A DNA stretch of 64,000 bases, taken from Guillardia theta CCMP2712. Its lineage: Eukaryota; Protista; Cryptophyta. Positions within the stretch are counted from its first letter, which is position 1; each line of letters opens with the position of its first letter. The stretch is taken from contig NW_005434653.1 in the NCBI RefSeq assembly GCF_000315625.1, positions 601,745 through 665,744 of the forward strand, given 5' to 3'. The notes beneath the pieces were generated by a model. The model was not told the origin of the DNA. It saw only the letters and a list, made by a program, of their open reading frames with translations, and searched no databases. Below, piece after piece: positions 18,416-63,199 of the stretch. The position numbers and the translations under genes were made by a program.

Positions 18416-18489
<74 letters not shown>

Positions 18490-19111: not shown

Positions 19112-19168
<57 letters not shown>

Positions 19169-33390: not shown

Positions 33391-33432
<42 letters not shown>

Positions 33433-35852: not shown

Positions 35853-35953
35853 GGAAGGGAGAAATGAAATGTCTGTGAGGAAGTTGTACAAGAATGCTCC
35901 AAGAGGTTCACTGGCAAGTAGGAGGCACCTCGACCCGCTCTGGCTCGCTGCCT

Positions 35954-36400: not shown

Positions 36401-37049
36401 GGTTCTTCTTCCCTGTACGTCAAACTGTCTGTTTGGAAGGGGAGCTGCACAAATGGTGAGAAGAGTGACATGGATGTTGAGGAAACCATGCCTGACCAAG
36501 CTCTCGGGGGCGCCAAACAGAACCTGGGGGTTGTACATGTCTTTGTTAGGGGGAGGGCGCAAAGTGGAAACAGGACATGAAGGGAAAGCTTCAAATATGA
36601 TGAGTAAAGAAGAGCAGAGATGTCACAGTTTCAGCTCTTTATGTGTCGGTAAGAAAAAGAAAAAGGATTTGAAAGGAATCGGATGGAGGAGGGAGAAGAA
36701 TGCTTGTATTTGGAAAGCAAAGGGGAAGGGAAACATGCAGGAAGACTGCACAAGGAGAGATGACTGTGGAAAAGAGAGAGCGAGAAAGGCATGCATGCAT
36801 GAAGTGGGGCGGCTTGGATCCTATACCTGCTCGTCATTCTCCTCGCCCCCACCATCTTCGCTCCTCCTACCACCATTACAAGCGCCGCCCTGCGCATCAT
36901 AGAGAGCGGATACTACCCCGTCATAGATGACCCCCCCTTTACATCAGATCTATCCAATCACCCCTACCCACTATATTGAGTAGGATACAGGGGGTTATCT
37001 ATAGCGATGTACTACCACTACCGGCCACGTTCATTACCCACCCCACACA

Positions 37050-37560
37050 ACTCAGTGACTCCTCTTGGCCCGCCTCAGGTATGTCAGTTGCGGGCCGGCG
37101 TACCGTACCGGGCCCGGGCCGGCCCCGGCGGGGGCCGGCCGGGCCCGGCCACTCAGCCTAGTACCGGGTGACTCAGGCCCCACGCCGGGCCTGGACTCTC
37201 AAGTCTGCCGCTGTGCGTGTTTGTACTTGACTTACACTCGTTTCCTGGCATGAGACACCGTCCCGGTGGCACTGAATCAGGCTGACTCAGTATTCAACTG
37301 GCAAACTGAGTCCCCAGCTTTTTCAAATAAGCTTTCAGTTTGCCAGCCTGTTGTGTCCACGTACCGCCCACGGCGGTGGTTGGCCGGGCCATCATGGCAT
37401 CGCGGCTCAGGGCCCGGCGGCCCGGCCCCCGGGCCGGGCCGGGATCATGCCGGACTGCTAGGCGGCTCGGGTCCCGACCCGGTGACCGGGTCCCCGCCGG
37501 GGGCCCCCGCCGGGGTGGCATCACTGTCTCAGCCCGAGGGTCACCCACCCTGGATGTCGC
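37050..37560. repeat. GC-rich palindromic-word island, flanked by ACCC-rich DNA
   Basis: GTACCGTACCGGGCCCGGGCCGGCCCCGG, ACTCAGTGACT, CCGGTGACCGG. Confidence 0.7.
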
Positions 37561-42179: not shown

Positions 42180-42935
42180 ACCCTAAACCTCTACCCCCCC
42201 CCCCTGATCTCTCCAAAAATCACCTGATTGGATAGGGTGGTGGGTTAGACGATGGGTTCCCGTGCTGCCGGACCTACCGACCTGTCCAGGGGTGGGGGTA
42301 TATCATGATCAGACCAATCAAGGGGTAGGGTGGTTAGCATTCCATTACGCCGGAGACCGGTGGGTACCTGGCAGTCGAAAGCAAAGGACGAAGTTGGGGT
42401 AGGAATCTCTATTGATCACAGAGGGTGGGGTGGGGACTGTACTATCAATGAACCTAGGGTGGGGTGATTCGGACGGGCTTGCCTGGGACGGGTATTAGCC
42501 CAGGCACCCAGGGCGGTCCGGCAGGATGCCAGTCATAGAGGAGGGGTGGTCAAGATGGGAGTATGGGGGGTCCTGGGGGTACCTCCCCTGGTAATAAACA
42601 AACTGGGGGGAAAGGAGATCACCGGGACTAGTACTAATGCCACCGAGCTCGGTCAGTGAGGAGTGCCGCGGCCCGGTCACCGTACGGTACTGGTGACCGC
42701 CCGGCCGGGCTTAGCTCAGCCTCACTGAGTGGCGGCCCGATGCCAGGCCCGGCCGCAGTAAGTTCGGACCCGGCGCCGTCACGGTAAGCCTAGTACGGTA
42801 GCCGGCGCTGCCCGCCGGGGGCCCGTCACCGCCGACGGTGCCGCTGTGCCCAAGGACCCCGCTGGTCAGGGCCCCGGGGCCGGTGAGCAAGCAGGCGAGC
42901 GCGGACCGGCGGGCAGCCGGGCTTCGAGTGACCGT
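42180..42935. repeat. GGGT-rich island (42180-42640) followed by GC-rich palindromic island (42640-42935)
   Basis: GGGTGGGGTGGGG words, then CCGTACGG, GCCCGGCCGGGC, GTCAC/GTGAC, CTCAG/CTGAG. Confidence 0.65.
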
Positions 42936-42939
42936 CGTT

Positions 42940-44977
42940 GCTTGCCCCAGGCTCTGCTGTCTCGGATTTTATTCCTCCTGCATGCTCCTGCTGCTTGTTG
43001 CTTGACCCTTCGGCTGCTTGTCTGCGCGGCTTCGCGCTTGGGCTGGCGATGCCGGGTCTGCTGACGGTTGCCAGCAGTGCTGGTTCTTTTCGGGCTTGTG
43101 TTTTGTGTGTGTTTGTGCAGCTTCTCGCTGTGAACTGTGTGCCAGGAGGTTTAGCTTGTTCCTGCTTTGTTTTGCTTGAGGCACTTTTTACCTTCTGTCA
43201 GTAAATCCTATTAGATCCCCTCAAGGCCTTCCCGCATTGCTATGCTCAGATGCTCAACTGCTTCTTCATGGCATGCCGATCTGCCAGTGTCCGACGCAAT
43301 GGATGTCAGCGCCAGCTCGATCCTTCCGTTGCTGCGCATCATCTCCAGACCTGCAAACGGCGATCCTCCAAGCTTCCTACAGCTGCCTCCGGGGTAGGAT
43401 TTACTTGCCGCTTTGTGGCGGCAGCGGACGTCTCGACTGACAGTGGTCAGTCGGCTGCTTCCGGGTATCGCGTCTAAGGGATTTTATTCCTCCTGCATGG
43501 TTTTCCTGCTTTCTGTGTTCCATCTCTACCGTTTTTCGACCTCCTCGAGGTCGAACTTGCTCTTTCACATGTGAGCGTTTTCTTGTCATCTCCTCACACC
43601 ATTCGTCGAGTTTCTTCAGGTTCTCCCTGTTTTCATTCAAAAATTTGAATTTTCCTGGCGGTCATCTGCATGCTACTTGGTATCTTGGGCTCTGTCGAGA
43701 CCTCATGGCACTAGGTTTCACTTGTGCTCTGTTCTGATCCTCTCCCTTGTACGGTGGGACTGGCATGCGACGCCCTTCCGCTCCACCTCCAGTGGCTCAA
43801 CCTTGCTTATCGCAACATTTGGCTCCACTACCTGTCACTGGCATGAGGCGTCGAGATCTACCTTGGGCTTTACTACTAGTGACGGGCGATACCATGTCGC
43901 TCGGCTGACCCTTCTTTTTCTCCAATGGGTTTGTTCAAGCGGAGGCTCTCCCCCAAGTGCCGAACTCCTGCTCGTCGGTCCAGCTTGCGCATCTACCGGC
44001 GTTCCTTCTTTCGACGCTGGGTAGCTCAGGCCCAGAGGCGCAGACTCGGCAGCACTCCTTTCTCTCCTGCTCTGCGTCCTGTATCCGGAGGGAATCTGCT
44101 GGGGTCCCCTTCCCTCCTCCAGTCGCCTCCCGTGGCTCCTCTCTCCCCCTCCCCCACCGCCATTGTCGACCTCAGCGGTCGCAACCTGACTGAGGCCTCT
44201 CCGCGGGTCGAGCCCGCCTCACTGACAAAGGTCTTTTGTGGATGCTGACAATGCCCAGACCGGGGAGGGGGAGGGGGAGGAGGACAAGCGCCCAGCGGCC
44301 CCTGGTGCTGCCTCCCCCTCCTCTCCGGACTCCTCATCATCCAGCTCGGATGATGCCTACCGCCGACTGTTTCAGCTTGATTCCTCAGCTGATGTTTCTC
44401 AGTCTCCAGCTGCAGGCGCTGACTCTCCGCCGTCCCTCTTCGGGGGCCCTGCGAAGGCATCCGATGCATCAGCCTGTGCTGCGAATGTCCTGCCTGACGA
44501 GGATGATCAACCTGACCTTGCTGATGCCGACCCTGATTCTGCTACGGATGTGCCCCCGGTTCCACCTATGGCCACCTCAGATTGGCCGGAGGGCTTGCAG
44601 TGGTTGATGTCCAACCTCCGAGTCTTCCTCTATATTCATGAGCGCTTTCGTCCTCATGTCACTGCGTCTCACCTCTTTGGTGAGACTGCAGAGCTTTGGC
44701 TGACTTGTCTTGTGTCTTTGCTGCAATTCATCGATCGATATGATCCTTCCTCGTCCAGCTATCAGACCCTTGTTCTGCTCTTTGAGCACCTTCCCGCCTT
44801 ACTGCTTCCCGTACCCAAGGCTGCCAATGGTCCTACCAAGGACGCGCTTATCAAGCGCCAGTGCCGACGTTTCTTGAAGGGTGAATGGAAAGCTCTTTTC
44901 AAGCGCTATCTGCCTGCTGCAGAAACCCATGGGAAGAAGCAAGCAAAGGGGGCGCGGCAGCCTTCACCGCCCCAAGG

Positions 44978-45282: not shown

Positions 45283-48200
45283 GCAGCAACGCCAGCGTCA
45301 GCAGCAGCGTCCGCGTCAGCAGCAGCAGCAGCAGCAACACCAGCAACCACCACAGCAGCGACCACAACCGCGCAGGCCGAGGGAGCAGCGGCAGTCCGGC
45401 CAATCGTCTCAGGAGTCTGAGCCTGCTCCTCCGCCGCGACCTACGCTGTCCCTCACCTCTGAGAGCGAGCGCCAAAGACAGTTGGCGATTCATCAGTTCA
45501 CTGCGGGTGACCTTCATCGGGCGGTACGGACACTACTGAGCTCCGGCATCTACAAGGCTGAATCTTTCGCTGATCTTCTTGCTGAAGCACAAGAGAAGTT
45601 CCCTGATGGTGCGTCGCCTGCCTTTGGAAGTGCTTCCGCGGATCATCTCACCCAGCAAGCGCTTGCAGTACTGCAGGTGGATTTGACTGACATCCTCGAC
45701 ACCACTAGCCTGATCCAGGCGATCAAGCGCTACAGCTCCTTTGCGGGGACCGATGACCAAGGGTGGAGGATTCGGCAACACCTGTCACCCCTTTCTAGTC
45801 ATCCTGCAGCTTTGAAGCTCTACTGCAAACATATCCTCCAAGGGGTCCTTCTTGGCCGGATGCCGGATCTTCTTATTCCTGCCCTGTCAGCCATTCGTCG
45901 AGGAGGCAGATTTATTCCCCTCTCCAAGGGAGCTGATAAACCTGGTCTCCGGCCAATTGTCATCGGTTCTGCACACCGTCGACTCGCGACGAAGCTTGCT
46001 TTGGCAGGGATTCGCTCTTTTCTTGACCAGCACTTCCTCTCGTCTCACCCTCGAGCGATTCAGTTCGGACTCGATCGAGACGGCTGTCTGAAGTTCTCGC
46101 AAACCGCGTCAGCGCTCCTGCCCCTTCACGCTCGCGGTGATGATGAGGATGTTGCCAAAAAAGTTTACGAAAGTTTACATCCCCTCCTGGCATCAACGTC
46201 TCAAGATTCAACTTCTTCACTTCGAGGTCGTCACTGGCGGGATTACACTTGGCGGCCTGCCTATCGGCACGGATGGATTTCATGCTAGTCAGCTCCGAGC
46301 GAAGGTTTCTACCCTCAACGAAGAGCTCTCGAAGCTCGGGCTCGTCCAGCATGGCTTCATGTTCAAGACGCTGGTGAGGGCGAGCCATCTCCAGAAGCTG
46401 CGCTTCTTCCTCCAGGGGTCTTCTCCGTTTCTCCCGCGGGTCCAATCACAGATTCGTCGCTTTGACCTCTCTGTCCACCTGGCGCTTGAGAAATACCACC
46501 GCTGGCCTTCCTCGCAGTACCTCGCCGCGCATCCCGACCTGCTAGAGTTTGCGAGGTTCAAGCGGGAGCTTCCGGGCGGCATAGTCGGGGAGGGGACGAG
46601 TTCAACGCGGCCCTCTGAGGGTCTAATCGCCGCCGAGCGGTACCGTGTTCCTGTGTCCAGCCTCCCTCCGTCCGCTGCCCCAGGCGGACCCCCGGGCAAC
46701 GCCGGCTCCTTGTCGGCGGCTGCCCTTTCTCCGTCCGCGGCCGCCCGCTTTGTGGCGGCAGCGCGGACGTCTCGACTGACAGTGGTCAGTCGGCTGCCTC
46801 CGGGTATCGCGTCTAAGGGATTTTATTCCTCCTGCATGCTCCTGCTGCTTGTTGCTTGATTGCTTGACCCTTAGGCTGCTTGTCTGCGCGGCTTCGCGCT
46901 TGGGCTGGCGGTGCCGCGCTGACGGTTGCCAGCAGTGCTGGTTCTTTTCGGGCTTGTGTTTTGTGTGTGATTGTGCAGCTTCTCGCTGTGCGCTGTGTGC
47001 CTGGAGGTTTAGCTTGTTCCTGCTTTGTTTTGCTTGAGGCACTTTTTACCTTCTGCCCGGCAGTAAATCCATTGTTCTGACCAGCCGATGTCACGGACGC
47101 TGCTCTCTCCTCATAGCCTGGACGTTCACTGCTCGAGATCTCTCCGTGCCCAGAAGCATCCTCTGGCGACCTTCTTCGTTGAGGCGCACGACTTCGTTCA
47201 TAATGCTGGAGCGATCCTCTACCGTCGTGTGAGGGCTCCTGCACCGGCTGCAGATGGCGCGGCGATCCCACCTGCCCCGGCTGCTGTGCCTGATGATGCA
47301 GGACGCCCCCCGGCATCTGTGGTACACATCCCTGGTTTGCGCGCTCTCGTCGACTCGTCTCATGAGCACTTTATTGCTCCGCCTGCGCAGCGAAATGTGA
47401 CCCCTCTTGTCATGCGCGTCTTCCCTCGCCATGTGCATGCTCGCGCTGCGCTGACCGATCAGCAGCGTGATATCCTCACCTTGCACAGCCGCAGGACACA
47501 CTCGCTCAAGTCGCAGGATAGGGTCTTGACAGTGCAGTCTACCATCTTCGCTCATTTTCCTGAGCGTGACCTGAGCCACTCTCCGATGCGAGTCTCGAGC
47601 TACTACCCCCTCAAGGCCTTCCCGCACCGCTATGCTCAGATGCTCGACTGCTATCTCCATGGCATGCCGATCTGCCAGTGTCCGACGGAATGTGATGGAT
47701 GTCAGCGCGAGCTCGATCCCTCTGTTGCTGCACATCATCTCCAGACCTGCAAACGCCGATCCTCCAAGCTTCCCACGGCGCATGACAACCTTACTCGTAC
47801 GATTCGGTCGATGCTGAACGAAGCTGGTCTTCAGAGCGTCATCGATACAGTGGGGGATCCTCGTTCTCGACGGCAGGTACCCTCCCATCCTCATGGCCGC
47901 AAGATGAAGGGCGATATCCACATCCCTGGAATCCGCGATCGAGGGTCCGAGCAGTACGAGGGCTTGATGGCGGACGTGACGTTGGTCCACCCTTACTGCC
48001 GACCTGACCAAGTGGGGGGAGGTCAACCTCGACGCCCTCCATGTTGCAGCGTCTGAGAAGATTCGCAAACATCGCGCTGCATATGCCATGACTACTCCTG
48101 CATCCTGACACCCTCCGCTTCATCTGGTATCTCGCGGACATCATTGCTCAGCGCTCGATGCCTCTTGAGGATGCGGCGTTTGGTCGGCACTTCGTGCCTG

Positions 48201-51200
48201 ATGACGGACCTGCTGCTGAGGTCCTGGCTCGCAAACGCGCCGCCACCTATCATGCCAGCGCCTCACTATGCAGCTGACGCTGGAGGCGCTCTTGTCTGGT
48301 GCGAGGCGCATGACGCCCTTGCGGGCGCAAGCACTTCTCGAGCCAGAGGACAGCTCCTCCTCGGACTTTGTCGAGTCGCCTGAGGAGGAGTCTTCGCCGG
48401 AGGTCTCCGACTCCGATGGGGGAAACACGTCGAGTGGCGCCGACGATCGGCGCGGAGCTGGCGAGGCGTCTCCGTCCCTCACTGTGACGTCGGGTGCCTC
48501 CGGAGAGCTCGACACCACTGGGGTGCTTGCTGCTGGTCCGAGCTCGCCTGCTTCCTCCCCGGCATCGGTCGGGTCACGCCGGTCCTTGGGCATTGCTGCG
48601 GCGTCGCCGCCGTCACGGGCGGCTACCACTGACTCGGCTACCGCTGACTCGGAGGCTAGCGAGGAGGACTACCTCGAGCGGTACCGTGTTCCTGTGTCCA
48701 GCCTCCCTCCGTCCGCTGCCCCAGGCGGACCCCCGGGCAACGCCGGCTCCTTGTCGGCGGCTGCCCTTGCTCCGTCCGCGGCCGCCCGCTTTGTGGCGGC
48801 AGCGGACGTCTCGACTGACAGTGGTCAGTCGGCTGCCTCCGGGTATCGCGTCTAAGGGATTTTATTCCTCCTGCATGCTCCTGCTGCTTCAAGTTGCTTG
48901 ATTGCTTGACCCTTAGGCTGCTTGTCTGCGCGGCTTCGCGCTTGGGCTGGCGGTGCCGCGTCTGGGTGCCAGCAGTGCTGGTTCTTTTCGGGCTTGTGTT
49001 TTGTGTGTGATTGTGCAGCTTCTCGCTGCGCGCTGTGTGCCAGGAGGTTTAGCTTGTTCCTGCTTTGTTTTGCTTGAGGCACTTTTTACCTTCTGCCAGT
49101 AAATCCTGTAGGCTATGCCTGACACTCTGAGTTTTACTCGCATACCGTACCCTGCTACCCTGCCAGTAAATCCTCTACTACCCTCAACGAAGAGCTCTCG
49201 AAGCTCGGGCTCGTCCAGCATGGCTTCATGTTCAAGACGCTGGTGAGGGCGAGCCATCTCCAGAAGCTGCGCTTCTTCCTCCAGGGGTCTTCTCCGTTTC
49301 TCCCGCGGGTCCAATCACAGATTCGTCGCTTTGACCTCTCTGTCCACCTGGCGCTTGAGAAATACCACCGCTGGCCTTCCTCGCAGTACCTCGCCGCGCA
49401 TCCCGACCTGCTAGAGTTTGCGAGGTTCAAGCGGGAGCTTCCGCATAGTCGGGGTGGGGACGAGTTCACGCCCTCTGAGGGTCTACACCCCGCTGTTTAC
49501 TATACGGCTATCGCTCGCTTCCTCGCTTGGTACTCTGACCAGCCCATGTCCCGGACCCTGCCCTCTCCTCATAGCCTGGACGTTCACTGCTCGAGATCTC
49601 TCCGTGCCCAGAAGCATCCTCTGGCGACCTTCTTCGTTGAGGCGCACGACTTCGTTCATAATGCTGGAGCGATCCTCTACCGTCGTGTGAGGGCTCCTGC
49701 ACCGGCTGCAGATGGCGCGGCGATCCCACCTGCCCCGGCTGCTGTACCTGATGACGCAGGCCGCCCCCCGGCATCTGTGGTACACATCCCTGGTTTGCGC
49801 GCTCTCGTCGACTCGTCTCATGAGCACTTTATTGCTCCGCCTGCGCAGCGAAATGTGACCCCTCTTGTCATGCGCGTCTTCCCTCGCCATGTGCATGCTC
49901 GCGCTGCGCTGACCGATCAGCAGCGTGATATCCTCACCTTGCACAGCCGCAGGACACACTCGCTCAAGTCGCAGGATAGGGTCTTGACAGTGCAGTCTAC
50001 CATCTTCGCTCATTTTCCTGAGCGTGACCTGAGCCACTCTCCGATGCGAGTCTCGAGCTACTACCCCCTCAAGGCCTTCCCGCACCGCTATGCTCAGATG
50101 CTCGACTGCTATCTCCATGGCATGCCGATCTGCCAGTGTCCGACGGAATGTGATGGATGTCAGCGCGAGCTCGACCCCTCCGTTGCTGCACATCATCTCC
50201 AGACCTGCAAACGCCGATCCTCCAAGCTTCCCACGGCGCATGACAACCTTACTCGTACGATTCGGTCGATGCTGAACGAAGCTGGTCTTCAGAGCGTCAT
50301 CGATACAGTGGGGGATCCTCGTTCTCGACGGCAGGTACCCTCCCATCCTCATGGCCGCGTTGAAGATGAAGGGCGATATCCACATTCCTGGAATCCGCGA
50401 TCGAGGGTCCGAGCAGTACGAGGCCGGGCGGCTTGATGGCGGACGTGACGTTGGTCCACCCTTACATTGGTAGCTCGGCCGACCTGACCAAGTGGGGGGA
50501 GGTCAACCTCGACGCCCTCCATGTTGCAGCGTCTGAGAAGATTCGCAAACATCGCGCTGCATATGCTATGACTACTCCTCCTCGAGCGTTCATCCCTCTT
50601 GCCATCTCGACGGACGGTACCCTGCATCCTGACACCCTCCGCTTCATCTGGTATCTCGCGGACATCATTGCTCAGCGCTCGATGCCTCTTGAGGATGCGG
50701 CGTTTGGTCGGCACTTCGTGCCTGATGACGGACCTGCTGCTGAGGTCTTGGCTCGCAAACGCGCCGCCACCTATCAGCCCCTCACCATGCAGCTGACGCT
50801 GGAAGCGCTCTTGTCTGGTGCGAGGGGCATGACNNNNNNNNNNNNNNNNNNNNNNNNNNNNNNNNNNNNNNNNNNNNNNNNNNNNNNNNNNNNNNNNNNN
50901 NNNNNNNNNNNNNNNNNNNNNNNNNNNNNNNNNTCGACTGACAGTGGTCAGTCGGCTGCCTACGGGTATCGCGTCTAAGGGATTTATTCCTCCTGCATGC
51001 TCCTGCTGCTTGTTGCTTGATTGCTTGACCCTTAGGCTGCTTGTCGGTACGGTCTGCGCGGCTTCGCGCTTGGGCTGGCGGTGCCGCGCTGACGGTTGCC
51101 AGCAGTGCTGGTTCTTTTCGGGCTTGTGTTTTGTGTGTGATTGTGCAGCTTCTCGCTGTGGACTGTGTGCCTGCCGGTTCAGCTTGTTCCTGCTTTGTTT

Positions 51201-52298
51201 TGCTTGAGGCACTTTTTACCTTCTGCCAGTAAATCCTATAGCCCTGCATCCTGACACCCTCCGCTTCATCTGGTATCTCGCGGACATCATTGCTCAGCGC
51301 TCGATGCCTCTTGAGGATGCGGCGTTTGGTCGGCACTTCGTGCCTGATGACGGCCCTGCTGCTGAGGTCCTGGCTCGCAAACGCGCCGCCACCTATCAGC
51401 GCCTCACTATCAGTGCAGCTGACGCTGGAGGCGCTCTTGTCTGGTGCGAGGCGCATGACGCCCTTGCGGGCGCAAGCACTTCTCGAGCCAGAGGACAGCT
51501 CCTCCTCGGACTTTGTCGAGTCGCCCAAGGGGGAGTCTTCGCCGGAGGTCTCCGACTCCGATGGGGGAAACACGTCGAGTGGCGCCGACGATCGGCGCGG
51601 AGCTGGCGAGGCGTCTCCGTCCCTCACTGTGACGTCGGGTGCCTCCGGAGAGCTCGACACCACTGGGGTGCTTGCTGCTGGTCCGAGCTCGCCTGCTTCC
51701 TCCCCGGCATCGGTCGGGTCACGCCGGTCCTTGGGCATTGCCGCGGCGTCGCCGCCGTCACGGGCGGCTACCGCTGACTCGGCTACCGCTGACTCGGAGG
51801 CTAGCGAGGAGGACTACCTCGAGCGGTACCGTGTTCCAGTGTCCAGCCTCCCTCCGTCCGCTGCCCCAGGCGGACCCCCGGGCCACGCCGGCTCCTTGTC
51901 GGCGGCTGCCCTTTCTTCGTCCGCGGCCGCCCGCTTTGTGGCGGCAGCGGACGTCTCGACTGACAGTCACTGGGTCAGTCGGCTGCCTCCGGGTATCGCG
52001 TCTAAGGTCATAGGATTACTGCAGAAGGTAAAAAGTGCCTCAAGCAAAACAAAGCAGGAACAAGCTGAACCGGCAGGCACACAGTCCACAGCGAGAAGCT
52101 GCACAATCACACACAAAACACAAGCCCGAAAAGAACCAGCACTGCTGGCACCCAGACGCGGCATCGCCAGCCCAAGCGCGAAGCCGCGCAGACAAGCAGC
52201 CTAAGGGTCAAGCAATCAAGCAACAAGCAGCAGGAGCATGCAGGAGGAAGAAAATCCCTTACACGCGATACCCGGAGGCAGCCGACTGACCACTGTCA
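42940..52298 (+). mobile_element. Tandem, rearranged array of a CRE-clade non-LTR retrotransposon with C-terminal restriction-like endonuclease; last piece inverted
   Basis: RT start LRPIVIGSAHRRL..QFG; thumb GITLGGLPIG; zinc knuckle CDGC..HLQTCK..HD; RLE GDIHIPG..ADVTLVHP..EKIRKH..FIPLAISTDG. A shared ~250-400 bp 3' block ending CAGTAAATCC recurs at ~42965, 46635, 48680, 50935 and inverted at 52010; partial copies at 43405 and 51820. Confidence 0.9.
50834..50933. other. Assembly gap (100 N)
   Basis: N run. Confidence 1.
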
Positions 52299-52398: not shown

Positions 52399-52577
52399 TC
52401 ATAAAACTATCATCGACTAAATTCTACAGAGGAAGAGCGGGAGGAAGAGAGGGAGAGAGGGAGAGGAAGAGCGGGAGGAAGAGAGGGAGGGAGGGAGGGA
52501 GGGAGAGTACCAGAGTTCAGTCTGACTGGCTTTCAGGTCGGGCGCCTGTCAGAACCGGCAGGTCGTCACGATCTGGC

Positions 52578-53944
52578 ATGGGCGAAAATCAAGACTCTTC
52601 CAGACAAGTGTCGGTGAGGACGAGCAGGAAGGAAAGGGAATGACACGGTTCTCAGGCTGGAACGAGCGGAGGGGCGATAGTGGCTGAAGGGGGAGCGAAG
52701 CTAAGGTATCGGCTTGGGGGATGCGTTGGAGAAGGAGCGACGGGGAAAGTTTACGTGGGTCTCAACGTGTCAACGGGCGATTTGCTCGCAGTCAAACAGA
52801 TCCACTTTGACAACATCACTCGCGACGAGGTGCGGTCGTATCGTATCTGATTTCCCTCCTCCTGCGCCTGGCTCTCCTCACACACCCCGCTCCCTGCTCC
52901 CTGATCGATGTGCTCTCCTTTTCCCTCAAACAAGTTGTCTTCCACTTTGCTCAAACGCTCTGAGCGTGTCGTTGCGTGCAGTTGGCTGCCATCGAACAGG
53001 AAATCCTCTTGCTACAGAAGCTTCGGCATGATCACGTCGGTGAGATGGAGGGGCTGAGAGAGGAGCTGAAAGAGGAGCTGAGCCGCTCTCAGTCTCATAC
53101 ATCGCCATCGACATCACTGACACCAACCTCAACATCCTCATGGAGTTTTGTCCGGGCGGGAGCGTCGCTCACCTTCTCAAGGCCTTTGGAGCTCTCGAAG
53201 AAGAAGTCTTGCGAGCTTACACTCGTCAGATCATTGAAGGCCTCGATTTCCTCCATCAAAATCAAGTCGTGCACCGGGACATCAAGGCAGCTTTCCCTCT
53301 CCTCTGCTTGTCTCCCCTCTGTTTTCTGTTCTCATTTCTTTGTTTGTCTCTCAGGGTGCCAACGTCCTGGTGGCTCACAACGGAGTTTTGAAGATCGCAG
53401 ACTTCGGGGCGACTATGGTGCTCACGGGGAACAAAACGATGACCGAGGATGGGAAGCAGATCCAAGGAACTCCTTACTGGCATGCCTTCGTCCACGCCCA
53501 AGGACCGTTCTAAACCTCGCGAGCAGGATGGCACCGGAAGTCATCAAGCAGGAGGCGTACGGGAGGAAGGCGGATGTTTGGTCCCTGGGCATGACTGTCT
53601 GTGACTTGTGGATCTTCTGCATCCTCTGAGAGGTATCAGGTGTTGGAGATGGCGACGGCAAAGCATCCTTGGGAGAAGTTCAACAACAAGTTTGCGTGAG
53701 CGCTGCTGAGAGTTTAGCTGGAGTGTTGTGAATGTCATGCAGGGCGATGACGGAGATCGCGTCGGGCTCTTCCCTCCCTGATGTCCCTTCACACCTCTCG
53801 CCCTCGTGCAAGGATTTCATCCTCTGCTGCATTCAGAGGTGACGCGTGAGAGGGGCTGAGGACGGCTGACGTGGGAGCAGGGACGTATCCAAGAGAGCCT
53901 ACTGCTACGACCTGATCAAACACGACTGGCTCGTTGCCCGCTGA
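52578..53944 (+). CDS. STE11/NPK1-like MAP3K kinase domain; 5' end possibly further upstream
   Basis: VGEGATGKVYVGLN..GDLLAVKQI, MEFCPGGSV, YTRQIIEGL, HRDIK|GANVL, DFG, GTPYW|MAPEV, ADVWSLG, HPW, HDWL. Confidence 0.93.
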
Positions 53945-53951
53945 TCTTCTA

Positions 53952-55318
53952 TTACTCTTGCGCAAAGAGATGCTGCTGGTACTGCTCACGCCGCTTCCGT
54001 TCCCTCACACACCCGTCAGTACCACATCTCATGCAGCACGCGGAACCTCGGGAGGTAGAAGACCCAACTTCCGCATTGCAGCTCGTTTGCGTTCCTGGCT
54101 GACGTGTGACATGGAGGGAAAGGGAGTGAGAGGGCTGGGCGTCACCTTGGAGTGGAGGGGGTTCTTCTTTGGGGGGACACGAAGAGGAGTATCTGCGCGT
54201 ATTCGTCAAGTGGTTGAGGCAAGAAAGAAACCTCACCAAGGCTGGGCGCCCTTCTCTTCCCTCCCTTGCTCATGCTCGTGCTTTCCTTCGCCATCCGCAT
54301 CTGTGCCATGACGTCACCCTTGTCATCCAACGGCTGCATCAACCGCTTCGGGGATCGTCCCCGTCGCCATCGCAGCCTTGGCATACTCGATGGCCTCTGC
54401 CAGCTGCCTGTCGCTGGAGGAGCCAGTCATGCCAGCAGCAGGAGGACGCGTCTACCTGATGCGCTTGGGAATGCTCGCGCTTGTGAAGGCGGAGAGGCGA
54501 TCTCGGCTCACTGTATGTCTGCTCGAGACACCATGAGGTTTGAAGCAGCGCAAAGCGAGCTCGCACATGGCAGCGTCCTGGAAGCAGAAGAGCTTGAACT
54601 GCCGGTCACATCAGCTTCGCAGGAGCCTCCATGGCTTCGCTTGCCTTCTTGCTGTAAGGGTTCTTGAGCGATCCTTGGATCAGGATGCCTGGCCATGCAG
54701 CGCTATCTTTCACCTGCAGACTGTCAAGGGATGGGAAGGAGAGCGTGCATTTAACCCGAGCCCAGACCACTTCCAGGGGAGGAGGCCTCCTCAGCCTTGC
54801 GCCTCCGATCTACATGCATCTTAGGTTGGACAGACGTGAAGAGGAGAGAGGAACTTCAATCCATTCATCTTCCTCTTCTGTTCCTCCCACATAATGAACA
54901 AGAACCTGCGAGGAATGGTTGGCCAACATCACCACACCTTCAAACCCATCTCACCGAGTCTCCCTCGCGCGCCTTGATGTTGGCATCCCACCATTCCCCG
55001 TCGAACTCAACCTCCACTGCGAATCCCTGCCCTTGTTTCAACTGCGACAACTCCAGAAAAGCGCAAACACACCACTTGCCACGGGTCCTCAGAGTTTGGT
55101 AGAGAGGATTCGGATCCTCCGTCCTCTCCCTCGCCTGTTCCATCTCTGGCTTCGGCTGCTTTCTTCCCTCTCCCCTCTTCCCTCTCCCCTAGTCCATGTT
55201 CGTGTTCCTGTCGCTGTTCATTCCCTTCGTTGACTCTGCTATCCCCCCCATCTCCGTCTCTCTCTCCCTCGTCTTCTGCTGTCACTCCCGCCATGTCGTC
55301 TCCTTTCTCCGTCGCCAT
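53952..55318 (-). CDS. Tudor/chromo-barrel-like domain protein, multi-exon
   Basis: VEVEFDGEWWDANIKAREGDS..VLVHYVGGTEEEDEWI after splicing; acidic N-terminus. 3' end approximate. Confidence 0.65.
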
Positions 55319-55339
55319 CCCTTCCGCCTGCACCAACTA

Positions 55340-55520
55340 GTAGGGCTCAGGTAGGGCTCAAGGCTGGGAGTGGACGGGCGCGGGCCCGGCCGGCGTTGCC
55401 CGGCCCGGCATTGGCAGCCTGACTCCGAGGCAGCAGCACTGTGCCAGTGTAACTAGAGTCCGGCGAGCCGCTGCTCAGCGGCTAGTACTGTCACGCCAAC
55501 GACATGACAGTACTCAAGTT
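55340..55520. repeat. Small GC-rich palindromic-word island
   Basis: GCGCGGGCCCGGCCGGC, GCCCGGCCCGGC, CTAGTAC, GTCAC. Confidence 0.55.
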
Positions 55521-55626
55521 TGTGTTGAAGGTGTGTGTGTATGTGCGTATGTGTGACTGTATGCTTGACTCTGATCATCTTTTACTGCTATGAAGCCGTT
55601 CAAACGGTTCAGCCCGGCCCGACATG

Positions 55627-56454
55627 TCACATGGAGCGAGTTGGATCCCAGCCGGTGGTCATGTAGCAGTCCCAAGACTTCATCTTCACCAGATCCTCCT
55701 CGGACAGTTCAAACGAGTCCACCTGCATGTTCTCCTTTATCCTCGCGGGGTTCGTCGATTTCGGTATGGTCACAAAGCCCTGTTGCAGCGACCACTTGAT
55801 GAGCACTTGCGCTGGCGTACACTTGTGCTTGCTTGCCAGGGTGAGAACCTCTGCGTCTGCCATCTTGGAGGCCTTTGCTAAGGGCGAGTATGCTGTCAGC
55901 ACGATCCCTTTCTCCGTGCAATACGCCACCAGCTCCTTCCGAGCCAGCCACGGGTGCAACTCTACCTGGTTGGTAGCCGGCAGAGTCTTGAAGTGCTTCT
56001 CTAACTCCTCCAAGTGGTGTATCCCATAGTTGCTCACTCCTATGCTTCGAGCTAGTCCTGCGGCCTTGGCGTCTTCGAGAGCTCGCCACTGCTCTAGACG
56101 GTTCTTCTTGTCGTTGGGAGAGTGGATGAGGTACATGTCGACATAGTCCATCCCGAGCCTCCTCAGCGAGTCCTTGAGCGCCTTCATCGTTCCCTCATAG
56201 TCATATCCCGACGCTCCCATGCTCGCAAGCTTAGTAGTTACAAACACTTGTTCGCGCGGCAGCCCAGACGCGCGGATCGCCTCCCCCACGCTCTCCTCGT
56301 TGCGGTAGTAGGCGGCTGTGTCGATGTGGCGGTAGCCCAACTGTAGGGCTGTGAGCACAGCATGGAAGGTGGTGGGTCCAGGTTCAGAGCGGAAGACTCC
56401 CAGCCCCAGGCGCGGCATGCTCCTCCCGTCGTTGAGAATCTTCGCCCCCTGCAT
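55627..56454 (-). CDS. Aldo/keto reductase (2,5-DKG reductase/AKR5-like), intronless
   Basis: GYRHIDTAAYYRNE, VFVTTKL, YLIHSP, IGVSNY, NQVELHPW, IPKS; catalytic D/Y/K/H present. Confidence 0.95.
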   Translation of the reverse strand: MQGAKILNDGRSMPRLGLGVFRSEPGPTTFHAVLTALQLGYRHIDTAAYYRNEESVGEAIRASGLPREQVFVTTKLASMGASGYDYEGTMKALKDSLRRLGMDYVDMYLIHSPNDKKNRLEQWRALEDAKAAGLARSIGVSNYGIHHLEELEKHFKTLPATNQVELHPWLARKELVAYCTEKGIVLTAYSPLAKASKMADAEVLTLASKHKCTPAQVLIKWSLQQGFVTIPKSTNPARIKENMQVDSFELSEEDLVKMKSWDCYMTTGWDPTRSM

Positions 56455-56574
56455 CCTTGCGACAAAGTAGGACCCCTCATCCCCTCTCACCCCTTCAGAG
56501 GAAAACAGAAACAAAGCGAACGCTTACAAGGCAAAGGGCACTAGGATCTAGGATGGGACCTTGCCTCCTGCCTC

Positions 56575-57200
56575 CTGCTCCTGCTCGCTTCTCCCTGCTC
56601 CCTGCTCGCTTCTCCCTTCTCCCTTCTCCCTTCTCCCTTCTCCCTTCTCCCTTCTCCCTTCTCCCTTCTCCCTTCTCCCTTCTCCCTTCTCCCTTCTCCC
56701 TTCTCCCTTCTCCCTTCTCCCTTCTCCCTTCTCCCTTCTCCCTTCTCCCTGCTCGCTTCTCCCTGCTCCCTTCTCCCTTCTCCCTGCTCCCTGCTCCCTG
56801 CTCCCTGCTCCCTTCTCTCTTCTCTCTTCTCTCTTTTCCCTGCTCCCTGCTCCCTGCTCCAGCTGGTGCTGGTGCTGGTTCCCTTAGTCTAGGGTTGCGC
56901 TGACGCTGTTCGTTGTCTGAGATGACTGCTTCGTAATGGGTATCATTGTTTTCCTGGCTAGCAGCATAAGGTTTCTGTATTCTCTCAAGTCTCTCGAGCT
57001 TAAATTGCTGGATAGAGCATGAGACAGCGAGGGTGAGCGTTAGAATGAGGGGGGGGAGAGGTAGACGGAGGACAAGGAGAGCGGGAGAGAAGGACAAGGA
57101 GAGCGAGAAGGACAAGGAGAGCGGGAGAGAAGGACAAGGAGAGCGGGAGAGAAGGACAAGGAGAGCGGGAGAGAAGGACAAGGAGAGCGGGAGAGAAGCG
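56575..57200. repeat. (TTCTCCC)/(CTCCCTG)n heptamers (56575-56860) and ~18-22-nt GAGAAGGACAAGGAGAGCGGGA minisatellite (57070-57197)
   Basis: Direct inspection. Confidence 0.9.
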
Positions 57201-57240
57201 TCTTCATGGGCTTGGAGGCAGGTTACATGTGTTGTTTCAG

Positions 57241-60200
57241 ATGTCAGCGCAACCAGAGCTTCTTCCTGCATGCCTCGTTCCTCGACACTACGACCTCGAT
57301 ATCGACGTGAACCTCAGCGAGTTTGTGTTTGCTGGGAGAGTGGTGCTGCCTCGTGATGGCAACCAGCGAGACTGACAGCGAGACAGCAAATCACGGCTGA
57401 GGTGAAGGAGGAGACAGACGTGATCGTGCTACATGCTCTTGACATCACCATCAAATCGGTTCAAGTCACTTCCTCCGATGGCTCAGGTCGAAACTTCATT
57501 GCTCGGACTTCCTCTCCCCTCCTTCTCCTCGGCTCCTTTTCCCTTCCTCTTGGCCTCTGCTCGCTAACCCAGTCTGACCTCGTCTCACGCCACCTTTCAG
57601 TCACTCGGCCCATCAGTCAGCCGCTGATCTCGCTCGCGCAGGCAAGCCTCACCTGCTCTTTCTGTCTATCTCAGACTGCATACAACCGGCTACATACCCC
57701 CCTATGTCCCCCCCTGCCCTCCCTGCCCCTCCCCTTCTCTGAGCCTTGGTCAGACTCAACCGCGAAAGCTTCACAAGTGCGACGGCGTCACCTCATTCTC
57801 TGAGGTCTTCGACTCGCCTGCATCTCCAGCTGACGCAGCTCAGGACACCATCTCCATCCAGCTGGAGCGGAAGCTTGCGTGTGGTGAGGTTGTGCTGGAC
57901 CTGAGCTACGACGGGGAGCTCAACAGCAACATGTGCGGCTTCTACAGGTGAAGCTGGAGGAGATGGGGGGGAGCTGAAGGAGCAGCAGGTCTAAGGCGCT
58001 CATAGACGGGAAGGAGGAGTACATGGCCGTGACGCAGCACGAGCCGACGGACTGCCGGTGAGCTGGTCCCCTGCTGGCGGGGCAGTCACTGCTCCTCATG
58101 CAGACGAACTCTTCCTTGCTTCGACGAGCCGGCGCTGAAAGCTTCCTTCGACGTGACGCTGCGAGTGCCTGCACACCTGACGGCTTTGAGCAACATGCCC
58201 GTGAAGGTGAGAGACTAGAGGGCTGCCGACTGTCTCCTGTCCTCCATCCTCCCCTCCTCACTGCTCACTCGCTCTCCCACAGGACGAGATTGTAGAGGCT
58301 GATCGCAAAGTCGTTCGGTTTGAACGCACTCCTCGCATGTCGACGTATCTCCTCGCCATGGTGACCTTCTCTCGTCGCCTTCCCCCCCTCATCTCCGCCT
58401 CAGGCTGTCGGACGACTGGAGCACGTGGAGGGAACGACCAAGAAAGGAGTCAAGTACCGAGTCTACGCTTGCCCTGGTCGCCCCCCCCCCCCCCCTCCAC
58501 GTTTTCTCTTCTCATTGACTGCGTGGCAGGTGTGACGAATCAATGTCTCTTTGCCCTCGATGTTGGCATGAAGGTTTCAGTCCCCACAAGCTCCTCATGT
58601 TCCCCGTCCACTTCTTTCTGCTACCTCCACCTCCACCTCCACCTCCACCTCCACCTCCACCTCCACCTCCACCTCCACCTCCACCTCCACCTCCACCTCT
58701 CCCTCACCCTCTACCTCTCTCTCACCCTCCACCTCCACCTCTCCCTCACCCTGGCTCTCGTCAGGTCCTCGACTTCTTTTCCGATTACTTCGGTATTTCC
58801 TATCCGCTTCCAAAGCTCGACATGGTGAGCATGTGAAGCTTTCAGCTGTTTCCTCGCCAGCTCACGAGCTCTCAGATCGCTCTGCCTGACTTCGCTGCCG
58901 GCGCAATGGAGAACTGGGGGCTCATCACGTACAGAGAGGCGAACCTGCTGATCGATGAGGTTAACAGGTGTGGCTCCTTGCCCACCCTCCCGCCTCCCGC
59001 CTCCTCCCTCCTCGTCTTCCTCCCTCCTCTTCGCTACCCCCCCTCCTCCTTCCGTCTTCTCACGCTCGGCTCTTCTCAGTCCTCTCGTCACGAAGCAGCG
59101 GGTGGCGTACGTGGTGGCGCACGAGCTGGCGCATCAGTGGTTCGGGAACCTGGTGACGATGAGCTGGTGGACGGACCTCTGGCTCAACGAAGGCTTCGCC
59201 ACCTGGGTTGGCAACTTCGCCGTCGATCATCTCTACAAGCACTGGGACATCTGGACCCAGTTTGTGAACCAGTACGCCGGCAGAGCACTGCAGCTGGACG
59301 CGCTGGAGACGTCGCACGCGATCGAGGTGGAGGTGAAGAGGTCGGGGGAGGTGAACGAGATCTTCGACGAGATCAGCTACTGCAAGGGCGCCGCCTGCAT
59401 CATGATGCTAACCTCCTTCCTCGGCATGCCCTCCTTCCGCTCCGGCATCTCCTCCTACCTCAACAAGTTCCAGTACGGCAACGCGAGCACGCGAGACCTC
59501 TGGGAGTCGCTGACGGAGGCGTCGGGCAAGGACGTGGAGAAGTTCATGGGGCCGTGGACGAGGAACGTCGGATACCCGGTCGTCTTCCTCTCTCGCTCCT
59601 CCGGGAAACTCTCCTTCGCCGTCGAGCGCTTCCTCGCCACCGGCAAGGAGGCGCCGGGAAGTGATTGGTGGGTGCCTATGCGGGTGCTGCATTCGTCGGG
59701 GAAGGAGGAGCTGCTCGACATCAAGGGGAAGACGCTGGAGGTGGAGGATGCGGAGGGAGGAGGATGGGTCAAGGGAAACCTCCACCAAACCGCCTTCTTC
59801 CGTATTCGCTACGATGACGCCCTTCTCGCCCTCCTCGGCCCTGCCATCAGCGAGCTTCGCTTGTCTCCCTCGGACAGGCTTGGCGTCCAGGCAGATGCCT
59901 TCGCGTTGGCTCGAGCAGGCAAGATGAGGACCGACCGTGCGCTGGCGCTGGCGATGGAGTACGAGGAGGAGGAGGACTTCACGGTGTGGGCTGACTTGCT
60001 TGGTTCGCTGGCGGATGTGATGAGCACATGGGCAAAAGAGGCGGAGTACGAGGGGCTGCAGCAGATGATGGTGAAGCTGCTGCAGAAGATCATGAAGAAA
60101 GTTGGATGGGAGGCGAAGGACGGGGAAGGCGCGCTCTTCCCCATGCTCCGCCCCCTCGTGATCCTCAACCTCGGGCGGAATGGCGACGAGGAGGTGGCGG

Positions 60201-61147
60201 CGGAAGCGAGGAGGAGGATGAAGGGCGGGTGGAAGAGCGTTGCAGCGGATCTTAGGTACGCAGTCTACGCGACAGTGGTGGGGACAGGAGGAGCAGAAGA
60301 GTTCGAGGTGGTGAAGCGAGTGTTCCTCGAGGCGGAGATGTCGGACGAGAGGAACCGAGCCATGCGCGCCCTCTGCGCTACTAGGGAGGAGAAGCTGATG
60401 GACCAGGTGCTGGCCATGACCCTCGACGGTTCCATCCGATCTCAAGACGTCTTCTACGTTTTCGGCAGCCTTTCTGCCAACAGGTGATGATGATCAATAA
60501 TGATGATGATGATGATGATCAATAATGATGATGATGATGATGATGATGAGGAACACCTAGCTGCAAGATAGGTCTAACTGTAATCAGGGTGGGGATGGAC
60601 GTTGCCTGGCGCTTCTTGCAAGCGAACTGGAGCAAGATCTCAGGTGAAGGAGAGGAGAAGGGCGTCGAGACTGAAGGCATGCAGGCATGTTCCCTTCCGG
60701 GCAGCCGCCACTTGCTCGCATCATCAAGACAACCGTCAGGTCTTCCTGCTGCTGCAAAGCTGCGTCTTACGGTTGTCTCAGCTCGTTCGCATCTGAGGAG
60801 CGCGCAGCTGAGGTGGAGGCTTTCTTTGCAGACAAGGTGAGGGCATGAGAGAGCGGGAGAGGAGGAGGAGGAGGAGAACCAGAAGGTTGACAGGAGGGGA
60901 TGCGGAGGGTCAGAAGGGGGCAGGCGAGGCTGAACATCCCGGCAGGAGACTCCAGGAGCGGAGATGTCGCTGAAGCAGGCGCTTGAGACCATCCGGATGA
61001 ATGTGAGCGTCTTGTCATCTCCTCCTCCTCCTCTGACTGCTTGCAGGCTGCATGGCTGCAGCGAGATCGGGTAGAGTGTGAGGGGGGCAGGGAGCGCGTG
61101 ACGATGACGTGCAGGACGTGGTGGGAAGTTGGCTGGCCTCCAAGTAG
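57241..61147 (+). CDS. M1 family puromycin-sensitive-type aminopeptidase
   Basis: [73 protein letters not shown]1-like C-terminus; stop TAG at 61147. Confidence 0.95.
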
Positions 61148-61179
61148 TTGGACCCCAGGTGGAGGGAGAAGCCCTCGCT

Positions 61180-62909
61180 TCACTGAGAGTGTAGGAGAGG
61201 ACAAGGCAGAAAGATTGGATCCTGAAACCGTGTCGGAAGCCTGCAAGAGGAATGACAATCAGCAGCAGCAGCAGCAGATGATGATGATGATGATGATGAT
61301 GACGACGACGACGATTGTCATGATGATTGTCATGGTGATTGTGATATGATGATGACGACAATTAGACGTTACCCAAAGGCCTTGAATACGAACTCATATC
61401 TATCTAGCTGCGTTTTCGTCAATTCGTTTTCTCTTTGCATGCAAAGTCACTCACCCTCTCTTGGGTGAATTCGAGCTTCACGTCCTCCAGCAGCTCTCGG
61501 GCTGCCTTGGAGTTCTTCTGCGAGTCTTCGCTCATGATCTGCTGCAGCCTCGCCATCATCTCCTCGTGCACTTGTAGCCCGCAGAGCTCAAACAGCGCCT
61601 CCGCCACCGCCTGCGGCTTCGCCACCATCTCGTCGTACTTGAGGGAGCGGATCCACCCGTCGCTCTTGTGCAGCAAGTCCAGCCCCCAGCGCATCATGCT
61701 CGTCCAGAACACGCAGACGTCCATGGCTGGCGCGTGCATGGTGCGACAGAAGCCGAGCGAGGTCAGCCAGGCGAGACGTCGCGGCACCAGCGCGAACCAG
61801 CGCCATCGCATCTGCCAGCACTGCCTCCAGAGCGCGTGATCGCGAGAGCTGCGCATGCTCACCCATAGGAGGACGAGCTGGTCCTTGAGCGAGTAGAGCC
61901 GCCAGTGTGGCTTGAGCTTCTCAACATAGGGATCGTTGTTGATGCTGAAGGTCTTGAAGAAGGAGGCGACAGAGGGCTTAGCATCGCGATAGAGAAAGAT
62001 TGCCTTGGAATCCGGGAACGAATCGCGGAAGGTTTCAGCCTTCAGGAGCGTGTAAGGAACCGGTGAGGACGAGGAGAGAAGAGTAAAGGAGAGGAGAGGA
62101 GAGGAGAGGAGAGGAGAGGAGAGAGGATTTACCAAGCACATTGATGTCGTGATGGTCTTGATACAGACTACTTGCTGCCCTATGAAGTCCTTAAGCATCA
62201 ACTTCGTTACGGCCTCCATCAGTTGCCGCGTATCCTTTCTGCCATAATCGCCACAATCCGGGCGGGCATGCGAGGGAGCGAGGAGGCGAGACAAGTTGAA
62301 GAGCGCGGCAGGCTCGGAGATGGTCACCACGCTCGGGTGAAGGTGAAGCAGCTGCGTGAGGAGCGTCGAGCCGCATCGCCCCGGGCTCCAGATCATGACG
62401 ATGCGACATGAGGGAGGAGGCAGATGCTGGGCCACTCGGAGGACTTTGCTGATGGGAACCGAAATGTGAGCTATCGCTTGATCGCTCTGTGCGATCGCAA
62501 AGAAGGGGAACTGCTTCGGGTCATAAAGGTTCAGCCCTGGCTTGGTGATCATGAACTGAACATGCGTAAAGAATTGACCCCTTCCGAGCTCGCCACTCCC
62601 GAAGCCATGGATAGTGACGTTGCGCCTCTTCAACAAGCTGCGAAAGGTCTCTTCAGAAATTTCCATTTCGATGGGAGCGAAGCGAGAGGATTTCGCTTCC
62701 TTGACCCTGGAAATCCATCGTTCAAGCTTGGATGCAGACAGCACCCTCATTCCTTCCCACGACGTCACGTGCAACACGATCTTCTCCTTGTCCCGTCTCC
62801 CTCTAGCCACCTGCGCCTGCATGCGCCTCCATCCCACCATCGCCACCACCGTCGCCGCCCCCACCGCTACCCATCTTAGCATGACAAGGAGCAGGCAGAA
62901 TCCGAACAT
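61180..62909 (-). CDS. Sulfotransferase-like P-loop protein with N-terminal membrane anchor
   Basis: 5'-PSB-like SPGRCGSTLL, SEP, IFLYRD, LKYDEMVAKP, DSQ. Last exons read LDRYEFVFKAFG|LPTRFQDPIFLP..*. Confidence 0.8.
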
Positions 62910-63199
62910 GACCCTCCCCCTTCCCCACTAAGTACCCACCCCTCTACCAAGTACCCACCCCTTCCATATCATGACCACCCCTGCAAAGCCCTCTCGCTCT
63001 ATTTCGAGTGAATGACCTACCCCGGTACTCCCTAGGCCAGCAGCTGGGCCCGCCTCGGACTCAACTCTGAGGCAGACTCGACAACCTTGCTTTCTCCCAT
63101 GCTTGTGGAACCGGTCTGAACATGCAGGGGCGAGGAGGAGGAGGAGGAGGAGGAGGAGGAGGAGGAGGACGGGGGAAAGAAGCGCGAGGAAAAGGGGAA

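Follow-up and report, generated by a model that had tools for sequence, protein, structure and literature searches.

Short insertions that distinguish the copies of a retroelement family in Guillardia theta CCMP2712 are palindromic: the inserted bases repeat the adjoining bases in reverse complement around exactly one central base, which is usually C when the left flank is the template and usually G when the right flank is. The insertions were studied in a 64,000-nucleotide stretch of contig NW_005434653.1 (positions 601,745 to 665,744; here called the window, with 1-based positions numbered over its whole length) and in further genomic copies of the same and other families. We propose, with chances that we judge to be evenly balanced, that these micro-insertions would be scars left by double-strand breaks at which each of the two ends had gone through a covalently closed hairpin. 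A preliminary description of the window, made from its sequence alone, had picked out both the palindromic form and the C-left/G-right polarity by eye; all of the indels that it listed exist, though their positions were off by a few bases (47054, for example, is 47058), and both regularities held in the wider sample described below.

A palindrome rule with one central base

The sampled genome amounted to 291 kb, consisting of the window and 58 other loci of an 87.1-Mb source assembly of 669 contigs, and in 178 kb of this at least four homologous copies were present. Private indels were called by an all-against-all comparison of 56 non-redundant pieces of the 291 kb, restricted to high-scoring segment pairs (HSPs) and polarised from the side of the query, where an indel was taken as derived if it was missing from at least 75% of at least four homologous partners, without recourse to a consensus sequence. 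Multiple alignment of whole loci was dropped because unrelated flanks gave spurious indels, and the HSP-restricted polarisation was used instead. In addition, 52 non-redundant genomic copies were aligned onto window positions 49178–50833. Compared with the genome, positions 1–16600, 16800–36700 and 52400–64000 of the window contained old or simple repeats only and no usable young family. The 178 kb yielded 133 private insertions versus 42 deletions.

In 73 of the 82 insertions of 3–11 nucleotides (nt), two or more inserted bases pair with the flank beside them across a single central base, compared with an expectation of 16–18 from random or permuted insertions that were passed through a pipeline identical to that for the real events; none of 1000 simulations came that high. 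Longer pairings were likewise in excess, with 24 events at arms of at least 3 (∼4 expected) and 12 at arms of at least 4 (∼1 expected). The size of the loop matters: loops of 0, 2 and 3 bases, at two or more paired bases, were found in 29, 17 and 21 events, versus 73 events with a loop of one base. The central base is C in 39 of the 53 insertions templated by the left flank (14/16 at arms of at least 3) and G in 48 of the 58 templated by the right (15/18). Replication slippage, which the preliminary description had already thought unable to produce this signature, does not account for it, direct copies of the adjoining bases (tandem duplications) making up only 10/82 insertions.

The rule can be extended to a grammar in which an ancestor a·X·b gives rise to a derived a·X·[C+P_L][P_R+G]·X·b, where X is a duplication of 0–4 nt and the tracts P_L and P_R repeat the adjoining flank in reverse complement; one or the other bracket can be missing. 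This grammar fully explains 54 of the 78 unique insertions of 3–11 nt, while random insertions at the same sites reach 5.9 (maximum 12) and other pairs of centres in an otherwise identical grammar explain 11–16. The fit extends to the larger events: 19/29 insertions of 5–6 nt fit (1.0 expected), as do 9/20 of 7–11 nt (0.06 expected). Two successive grammar events explain a further 13 of the 24 remaining insertions, compared with 4.3 for random ones.

Several full forms recur (TCG-C-CGA-G-TCG, GTG-C-CAC-G-GTG and TTC-C-GAA-G-TTC), and one 10-nt event without duplication has copied tracts of 4 nt on both sides. At the other extreme, 6 of the 16 two-base insertions in the sample are CG, i.e. the two caps alone. 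Copied tracts of 0, 1, 2, 3, 4 and 5 nt were counted 16, 9, 31, 10, 9 and 1 times, with a mode of 2. Both caps stand at one site in 22 fitted events of 3–11 nt, and 12 both-cap events have no duplication. By minimal parse, X is absent from 40 events, and lengths of 1, 2 and 3 nt occur in 13, 10 and 4 events.

Sequence context of the insertions

No sequence motif was found at the insertion sites of the sampled copies; the neighbouring ancestral base follows no rule, and the apex is C or G whatever the context. The sites also held no pre-existing palindrome, the mean ancestral arm being 1.28 there and 1.23 at random sites. Events that fit the grammar keep all flank bases, and private deletions form a class apart, being ordinary, often with microhomology, and without filler. 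The insertions are not significantly biased in orientation with respect to the element (9 left versus 4 right among unambiguous events) and have no clear hotspots along it, with ∼12 event pairs within 3 nt by hand count versus ∼7 expected, several of these being compound events within a single copy. Their density is ∼1.3 per kb at ∼0.6% private divergence.

Private substitutions were inspected as well, and no spectrum like that of repeat-induced point mutation (RIP) was found among them: there is no C-to-T bias, and transitions are about as frequent as transversions. The private substitutions of the retroelement family are unusually rich in transversions, C>G contributing 82 and T>G 75 of 547, and some of these may represent the addition of a cap combined with the loss of one base.

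Insertions in the window, allele by allele

The individual insertions are listed in Table 1 together with the retroelement fragments that carry them. The one-step rule fits by program at 46607, 48890 and 51968, and by hand on the sequence at 47058 and 51410, two cases that do not appear in the sample-wide event list; the parse of 51410 agrees with identical T[CAG]T events listed elsewhere in the sample. All six window cases that fail a single step (46574, 48251, 50359, 50423, 51043 and 47527, the last of which is missing from the preliminary description) need two successive events. The preliminary description had read eight insertions as single-step examples, and this stands for the five just named but not for 46574, 50359 and 51043; the two cases that it had set apart as compound, at 48253 and 50424, do parse as two successive events, at 48251 and 50423. 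It had also been right that the insertion at 50359 shifts the reading frame, the translation of the open reading frame (ORF) diverging after ..SHPHGR. No listed insertion depends on the assembly gap at 50834–50933 or sits at its edges. As a separate observation, the CACTG at 51968 lies inside a loop of 4 nt closed by a perfect 8-bp stem (CGACTGAC..GTCAGTCG) that is native to the element (window 51955–51985), and this palindrome is mostly deleted in one other copy.

Table 1. Derived insertions and retroelement fragments in the window
Feature	Position	Strand	Observations
CGGC insertion	47058..47061	.	CTGCC, then C, then GGC (reverse complement of GCC); left-templated, cap C; matches 90 short / 1 long
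CACTG insertion	51968..51972	.	CAGT+C+ACTG, left-templated, four copied bases; absent from 30/31 copies; matches 45 short / 1 long
CAA insertion	48890..48892	.	CTT+C+AA(G), left-templated; absent from 39/41 copies; matches 50 short / 1 long
A (46605) + GCG (46607) insertion, compound	46605..46609	.	GC+G before GC, right-templated, cap G; absent from 22/22 copies; matches 26 short / 1 long
TCAG insertion	51410..51413	.	T[CAG]T, both caps, one copied base, 1-nt duplication; in 1/28 copies; matches 6 short / 1 long
GGGCG insertion, compound	46574..46578	.	Two successive events only; absent from 23/23 copies
CATGC insertion, compound	48251..48255	.	Two-step parse; absent from 25/26 copies
GTTG insertion, compound	50359..50362	.	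Two-step parse; absent from 28/31 copies; frameshifts ORF 49228–50436
GCCGGGC insertion, compound	50423..50429	.	Two right-templated events, GCC+G then GC+G; absent from 30/31 copies
GTCGGTACG insertion, compound	51043..51051	.	Two-step parse; common to one other genomic copy; long allele matched twice
TGACAG insertion	47527..47532	.	Two-step parse; common to window copies 1 and 2 (also 49985–49990); absent from 30/32 copies
Two-base insertion	46761..46762	.	Readable as plain GC slippage or as cap C + cap G
Retroelement copy 1, 5′-truncated	46197..49110	+	Self-alignment and alignment to genomic copies
Nested 3′-end fragment of the same family, interrupting copy 1	46634–47075		Self-alignment
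Retroelement copy 2, 5′-truncated, holding the assembly gap	49178..51241	+	Self-alignment
Third 5′-truncated family fragment, abutting the 3′ end of copy 2	51242..52007	+	∼97% identical to 48097–48857
Inverted 3′-end family fragment	52010..52298	-	Reverse complement of 46777–47056
Assembly gap (N)	50834..50933	.	Self-alignment; unbridged by contigs

Polarity and reality of the events

Exact matches of the long and short alleles were counted in the 291-kb sample, and each long allele had 1–2 matches whereas the short alleles had 25–90 in ten cases and 6 for 51410. Since the long alleles are rare and the short ones common, the long alleles are derived insertions and not the ancestral state, in agreement with the preliminary description. 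Four insertions were found in two sampled copies each and were therefore inherited through later duplication. Among contigs of public sequencing runs, the 47058 allele lies within an exact 95-nt contig spanning 47029–47123 (an independent run of 2021) and the 51043 allele within an exact 65-nt contig spanning 51016–51080 (an independent run of 2023). The alleles are thus present in exact contigs, but the shorter sides of these two informative contigs measure 25–29 bases, below the 31 bases that the tool requires for bridging, so that the contig support for the two alleles is modest.

We give a very small probability to the idea that the insertions are artefacts of assembly, cloning or alignment. 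Such an origin might be suspected from the highly repeated nature of the family and from read support that comes from short contigs only. It is opposed by the four events that recur in two sampled copies, by the runs of 2021 and 2023 that independently contain window alleles, and by the identical treatment of the nulls; moreover, errors of base calling or slippage do not yield flank-templated palindromes of 5–10 nt with a fixed apex.

The signature outside the retroelement family

The form X-C-X'-G-X is also present in a dead copy of an unrelated reverse transcriptase (RT) family. Within the window, three islands (8501–9250, 37050–37560 and 42501–43000) contain 23–40 C/G-centred odd palindromes with arms of at least 3, versus ∼7–8 expected (3–5 times); none of 300 dinucleotide shuffles reached the observed counts, and at arms of at least 4 the islands hold ∼4–9 times the expectation. 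A/T-centred palindromes show no clear excess in the islands, the only case being 42501–43000 at arms of at least 3 (7 versus 3.3), and even palindromes are at most weakly in excess, in two islands and at arms of at least 4. Two control stretches show no excess. A count over the whole window gave no excess either, but with ∼25 events expected against a background of 460 it is too insensitive. The island at 37050–37560 matches no repeat, that at 8501–9250 overlaps the end of an old RT-bearing repeat, and that at 42501–43000 abuts fragments of the retroelement family. Given that the signature occurs in an unrelated RT family and in islands, the process is not confined to this retroelement family and has hotspots.

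We also observed that the words CTCAG and TGACTCA recur in these GC-rich islands. TGACTCA is at the same time the bZIP (AP-1/GCN4) site, and some of the recurring words may be regulatory.

A proposed hairpin model for the insertions

The hairpin-footprint logic put forward in the preliminary description fits the data, in that inverted copies of the flank abut the flank around a fixed C on the left and a fixed G on the right. In the model that we propose, a break would be blunt, or staggered by 1–3 nt and filled in to give the short duplication X, after which one C would be added to the 3′ strand of each end. The C-bearing 3′ strand would then be connected to the 5′ terminus of the strand complementary to it, placing the C at the tip of a hairpin, and the hairpin would be nicked a few bases past the tip, most often 2, to leave flank + C + reverse complement of the flank. 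Finally, the two processed ends would be joined, at times via annealed copied tracts, to give X-C-X'-G-X. The left end reads C and the right end G on the plus strand because the same event takes place on the two strands. We infer both the hairpin intermediate and the order of these steps from the scars in the aligned copies.

A perfect odd palindrome with a one-base apex indicates that, at one and the same duplex end, a single added C came to connect the top strand with the bottom strand. From the geometry, primed snap-back synthesis should be unable to produce such an apex, since the primer terminus would have to pair with itself. Processing of both ends, intact flanks, the 2-nt mode and the annealing tracts point to protected, closed hairpin ends opened off-centre. 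Artemis-type nucleases open hairpins at position 2, matching the mode of the copied tracts, and the genome encodes Ku, SNM1/Artemis-family and PolX proteins, genes that are compatible with the hairpin model and non-diagnostic. The agent would then be an end-processing activity that works genome-wide, either host repair or a hairpin-forming nuclease, and not the excision of a mobile element. Of the two options in the preliminary description, that of a host nuclease or a fold-back repair system is compatible with the data; its framing as an insertional analogue of RIP is not supported, since islands and an unrelated RT family carry the signature and the substitution spectrum is not RIP-like.

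Several points count against the hairpin model. The polarity is imperfect, with G at 8/53 left centres and C at 6/58 right centres, and 11/78 events (∼14%) fit neither one nor two steps of the grammar. The evidence for the hairpin intermediate consists of sequence scars, and read support is thin, the family shattering into Logan contigs of mostly ∼50–480 nt in which absences are uninformative. We know of no enzyme that would add exactly one C to an arbitrary break end and close that end as a hairpin, and the route to two hairpinned ends that is known to us is the excision of a DNA segment by a DDE transposase. Micro-insertions per private substitution number 125/547 in this retroelement family and 8/788 in two other RT families (∼20x), a comparison that is confounded because selection on intact ORFs removes indels. 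These two families have mostly intact ORFs of >1000 amino acids (aa), and in the two degenerate copies that they include, 7 insertions accompany 71 substitutions; some targeting of the retroelement family is compatible with these rates.

Alternative explanations

The other option in the preliminary description was a cut-and-paste element with C...G termini that repeatedly inserts and excises. In such a scheme, a transposon with 5′-C...G-3′ ends would be nicked one base inside the element, leave hairpins on both flanks and make the insertions its excision footprints. Among well-characterised processes, transposon excision alone leaves a pair of hairpinned ends for joining, and it would explain the fixed C and G as transposon-derived bases and the missing break-site motif by arbitrary insertion sites; the form X-C-X'-G-X with a 3-nt X even resembles a 3-bp target duplication with annealed copied tracts. 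The 12 both-cap events without duplication are, however, impossible for a transposon that makes duplications, and the duplications elsewhere vary between 1 and 3 nt. No filled site was encountered in ∼94 kb of family copies, in which the sole large insertions are the family's own 3′-end fragments, and the observed density of scars at so low a private divergence would require enormous transposition activity. The Pfam models for RAG1 (PF12940), hAT dimerisation (PF05699) and CACTA (PF02992) had no match in the genome, a weak argument in that the controls likewise gave no signal, and there were only six weak matches to Mutator-like elements (MULEs), whose target duplications are ∼9 bp. A duplication-making transposon is thus disfavoured, while a C...G-ended one that makes no target duplication is still conceivable; excision in general strikes us as distinctly unlikely.

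Polymerases offer another source of inverted copies, through templated insertion during alternative end joining or template switching, performed by DNA polymerase theta (Pol theta) or by an RT acting as terminal transferase and then copying back. Inverted insertions templated by the adjoining flank are a hallmark of synthesis-dependent microhomology-mediated end joining (SD-MMEJ) and of snap-back in Pol theta-mediated end joining (TMEJ), and many RT-bearing elements are active in the G. theta genome. RTs share the snap-back activity, including non-templated addition beforehand, but the terminal-transferase preference of those enzymes is T=A>G>>C, not C (10.1101/2022.03.14.484287). Snap-back, furthermore, needs a paired upstream primer and a loop of several bases, whereas the loop here is one base and loops of 0, 2 and 3 are weakly or not enriched; events that fit the grammar lose no flank; and the lack of prior palindromy at the sites speaks against quasipalindrome correction. 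Polymerase synthesis is therefore an account that we consider unlikely, if worth keeping in mind. Breaks might instead stem from abortive integration of the retroelement itself, in which its endonuclease cuts and reverse transcription fails or halts after 1–2 bases, concentrating the signature at landing sites. The family copies contain, in 51 kb, at least 11 extremely 5′-truncated 3′-end fragments with 3–12 bp duplications, micro-insertions per substitution are highest in this family, and short variable duplications suit staggered nicking. Against this, the element ends in ..TATA(C), so that from minimal cDNA one would expect a G following the left flank or a C preceding the right one, which is the reverse of the observed polarity; the orientation bias (9 versus 4) is not significant; and another RT family and the islands bear the signature too. 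Abortive integration would in any case account only for the source of the breaks and not for their hairpin-like processing, and we give it a slim chance.

Comparison with known systems

Under the hairpin model, the insertions resemble the palindromic (P) nucleotides of V(D)J coding joints and the footprints of Transib/RAG and hAT elements: an inverted copy of the flank abuts the flank, both ends are processed and the flank is retained. The copied tract is also short, with the mode of 2 that would be expected, by analogy with V(D)J joints, from off-centre opening of a hairpin. They differ in the apex, which has no extra base in RAG joints and is the complement of the neighbouring flank base, and so site-dependent, in hAT footprints, whereas the G. 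theta scars have a fixed extra C. Unlike hAT, Transib and CACTA footprints, they come with no target duplication of constant length and no signal or element end that could be recognised, nor did we find a matching transposase, and unlike V(D)J events they are germline and genome-wide rather than locus-specific.

SD-MMEJ and Pol theta snap-back share with the insertions the inverted templating from DNA beside the break, at times iterated at one site, but not the one-base loop, the fixed non-templated C or the lack of visible priming microhomology and accompanying deletion. The deletion and junctional microhomology by which SD-MMEJ is recognised are missing from the grammar-fitting events, 54/78 being pure insertions with intact flanks. 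Quasipalindrome template switching (the Ripley model and short template switches) also creates or perfects short palindromes, though it requires a pre-existing imperfect palindrome of a kind that the sites here do not have. The 1–3 nt direct duplications that flank some events recall the filling-in of staggered breaks (e.g. the 2–4 bp duplications of the topoisomerase II, or Top2, type), but most events have no duplication and the others hold C/G-capped inverted filler between the copies. As in RIP, dead repeat copies are progressively damaged; unlike in RIP, the damage is not repeat-specific, has no C-to-T bias and consists of insertions rather than substitutions.

We found no published description of a C-capped palindromic insertion signature, in Guillardia or elsewhere, in a literature coverage that was incomplete. 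In most genomes, small insertions arise by slippage as tandem duplications, and hairpin-end chemistry has so far been associated with V(D)J recombination and with a small number of transposon families. Here, the dominant class of insertions follows a near-deterministic grammar, which would imply that ordinary chromosomal breaks go through hairpin intermediates. If the scars are the work of a host pathway, a concrete biochemical prediction follows, namely one C at the hairpin tip and opening ∼2 nt away. A process that favours insertion over deletion to the extent seen here could also account for palindrome-rich islands between genes, and if the end-processing interpretation is true, it would constitute a new insertional mutational process that shapes intergenic DNA. 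Going further, and as a tentative and rather doubtful proposal, G. theta, and perhaps cryptophytes generally, may possess an undescribed activity that caps break ends with a one-C-apex hairpin before joining, and that produces GC-rich intergenic islands of C/G-centred palindromes where it acts repeatedly at hotspots. The grammar is usable as a computational marker in other protist genomes.

The retroelement family and other features of the window

By self-alignment, window positions 46197–52298 consist of nested and abutting 5′-truncated fragments of one retroelement family with a mutual identity of 95–97%. The flanks of the gap at 50834–50933 correspond, collinearly and on the same strand, to 48093–48314 (left) and 48811–49111 (right) of copy 1, which is consistent with one continuous copy in which ∼496 bp would be missing instead of 100; none of four public runs contained a bridging contig. 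An intact relative (the L005 ORF, 865 aa) encodes a divergent RT that scores 28.9 bits with PF00078, just below the Pfam cut-off of 29.6, and proteins of the family match GUITHDRAFT entries at 89–97% identity; relatives carry the annotation reverse transcriptase. The 3′ end of the family is a defined one (..CCAGTAAATCC TATA(C)), and the family inserts as extremely 5′-truncated fragments with 3–12 bp target duplications, often into its own copies. The RT, 5′ truncation, defined 3′ end and variable target duplications are typical of a target-primed retrotransposon without long terminal repeats (non-LTR), similar to the long interspersed nuclear elements (LINEs). C-terminal to the RT lies a Cys/His-rich stretch that may be a restriction-like endonuclease domain of the CRE/R2/NeSL type; it gave no sequence match in Pfam or the Protein Data Bank (PDB).

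Fragments of 14–43 nt from the family's own 3′ end lie inside other copies at many sites (L002–L030), in both orientations and with 3–12 bp target duplications; at L013:2556–2634, two of them stand head to head, 20 bp apart. Insertion of the family into its own DNA seems to be unusually frequent.

Elsewhere in the window, a 175-bp exon-like stretch at 11529–11703 has at least 20 genomic copies at 88–99% identity, some of them as inverted pairs on contig C56, and is part of a multi-copy gene family for a small protein. A further RT family in the sample (L031–L044, e.g. G000:C7:12441–16202) has open frames of ∼2000–2500 aa and copies that are 98.6% identical, many of which lie 1–20 kb from contig ends, and it may be a subtelomeric or telomere-associated element. 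Finally, about half of the sampled 31-mers of the retroelement were found in freshwater, lake and runoff metagenomes (runs X2, X5, X7, X8, X10–X12 and X14), matches that are unexpected for a marine laboratory strain and that could reflect a close freshwater relative or contamination.

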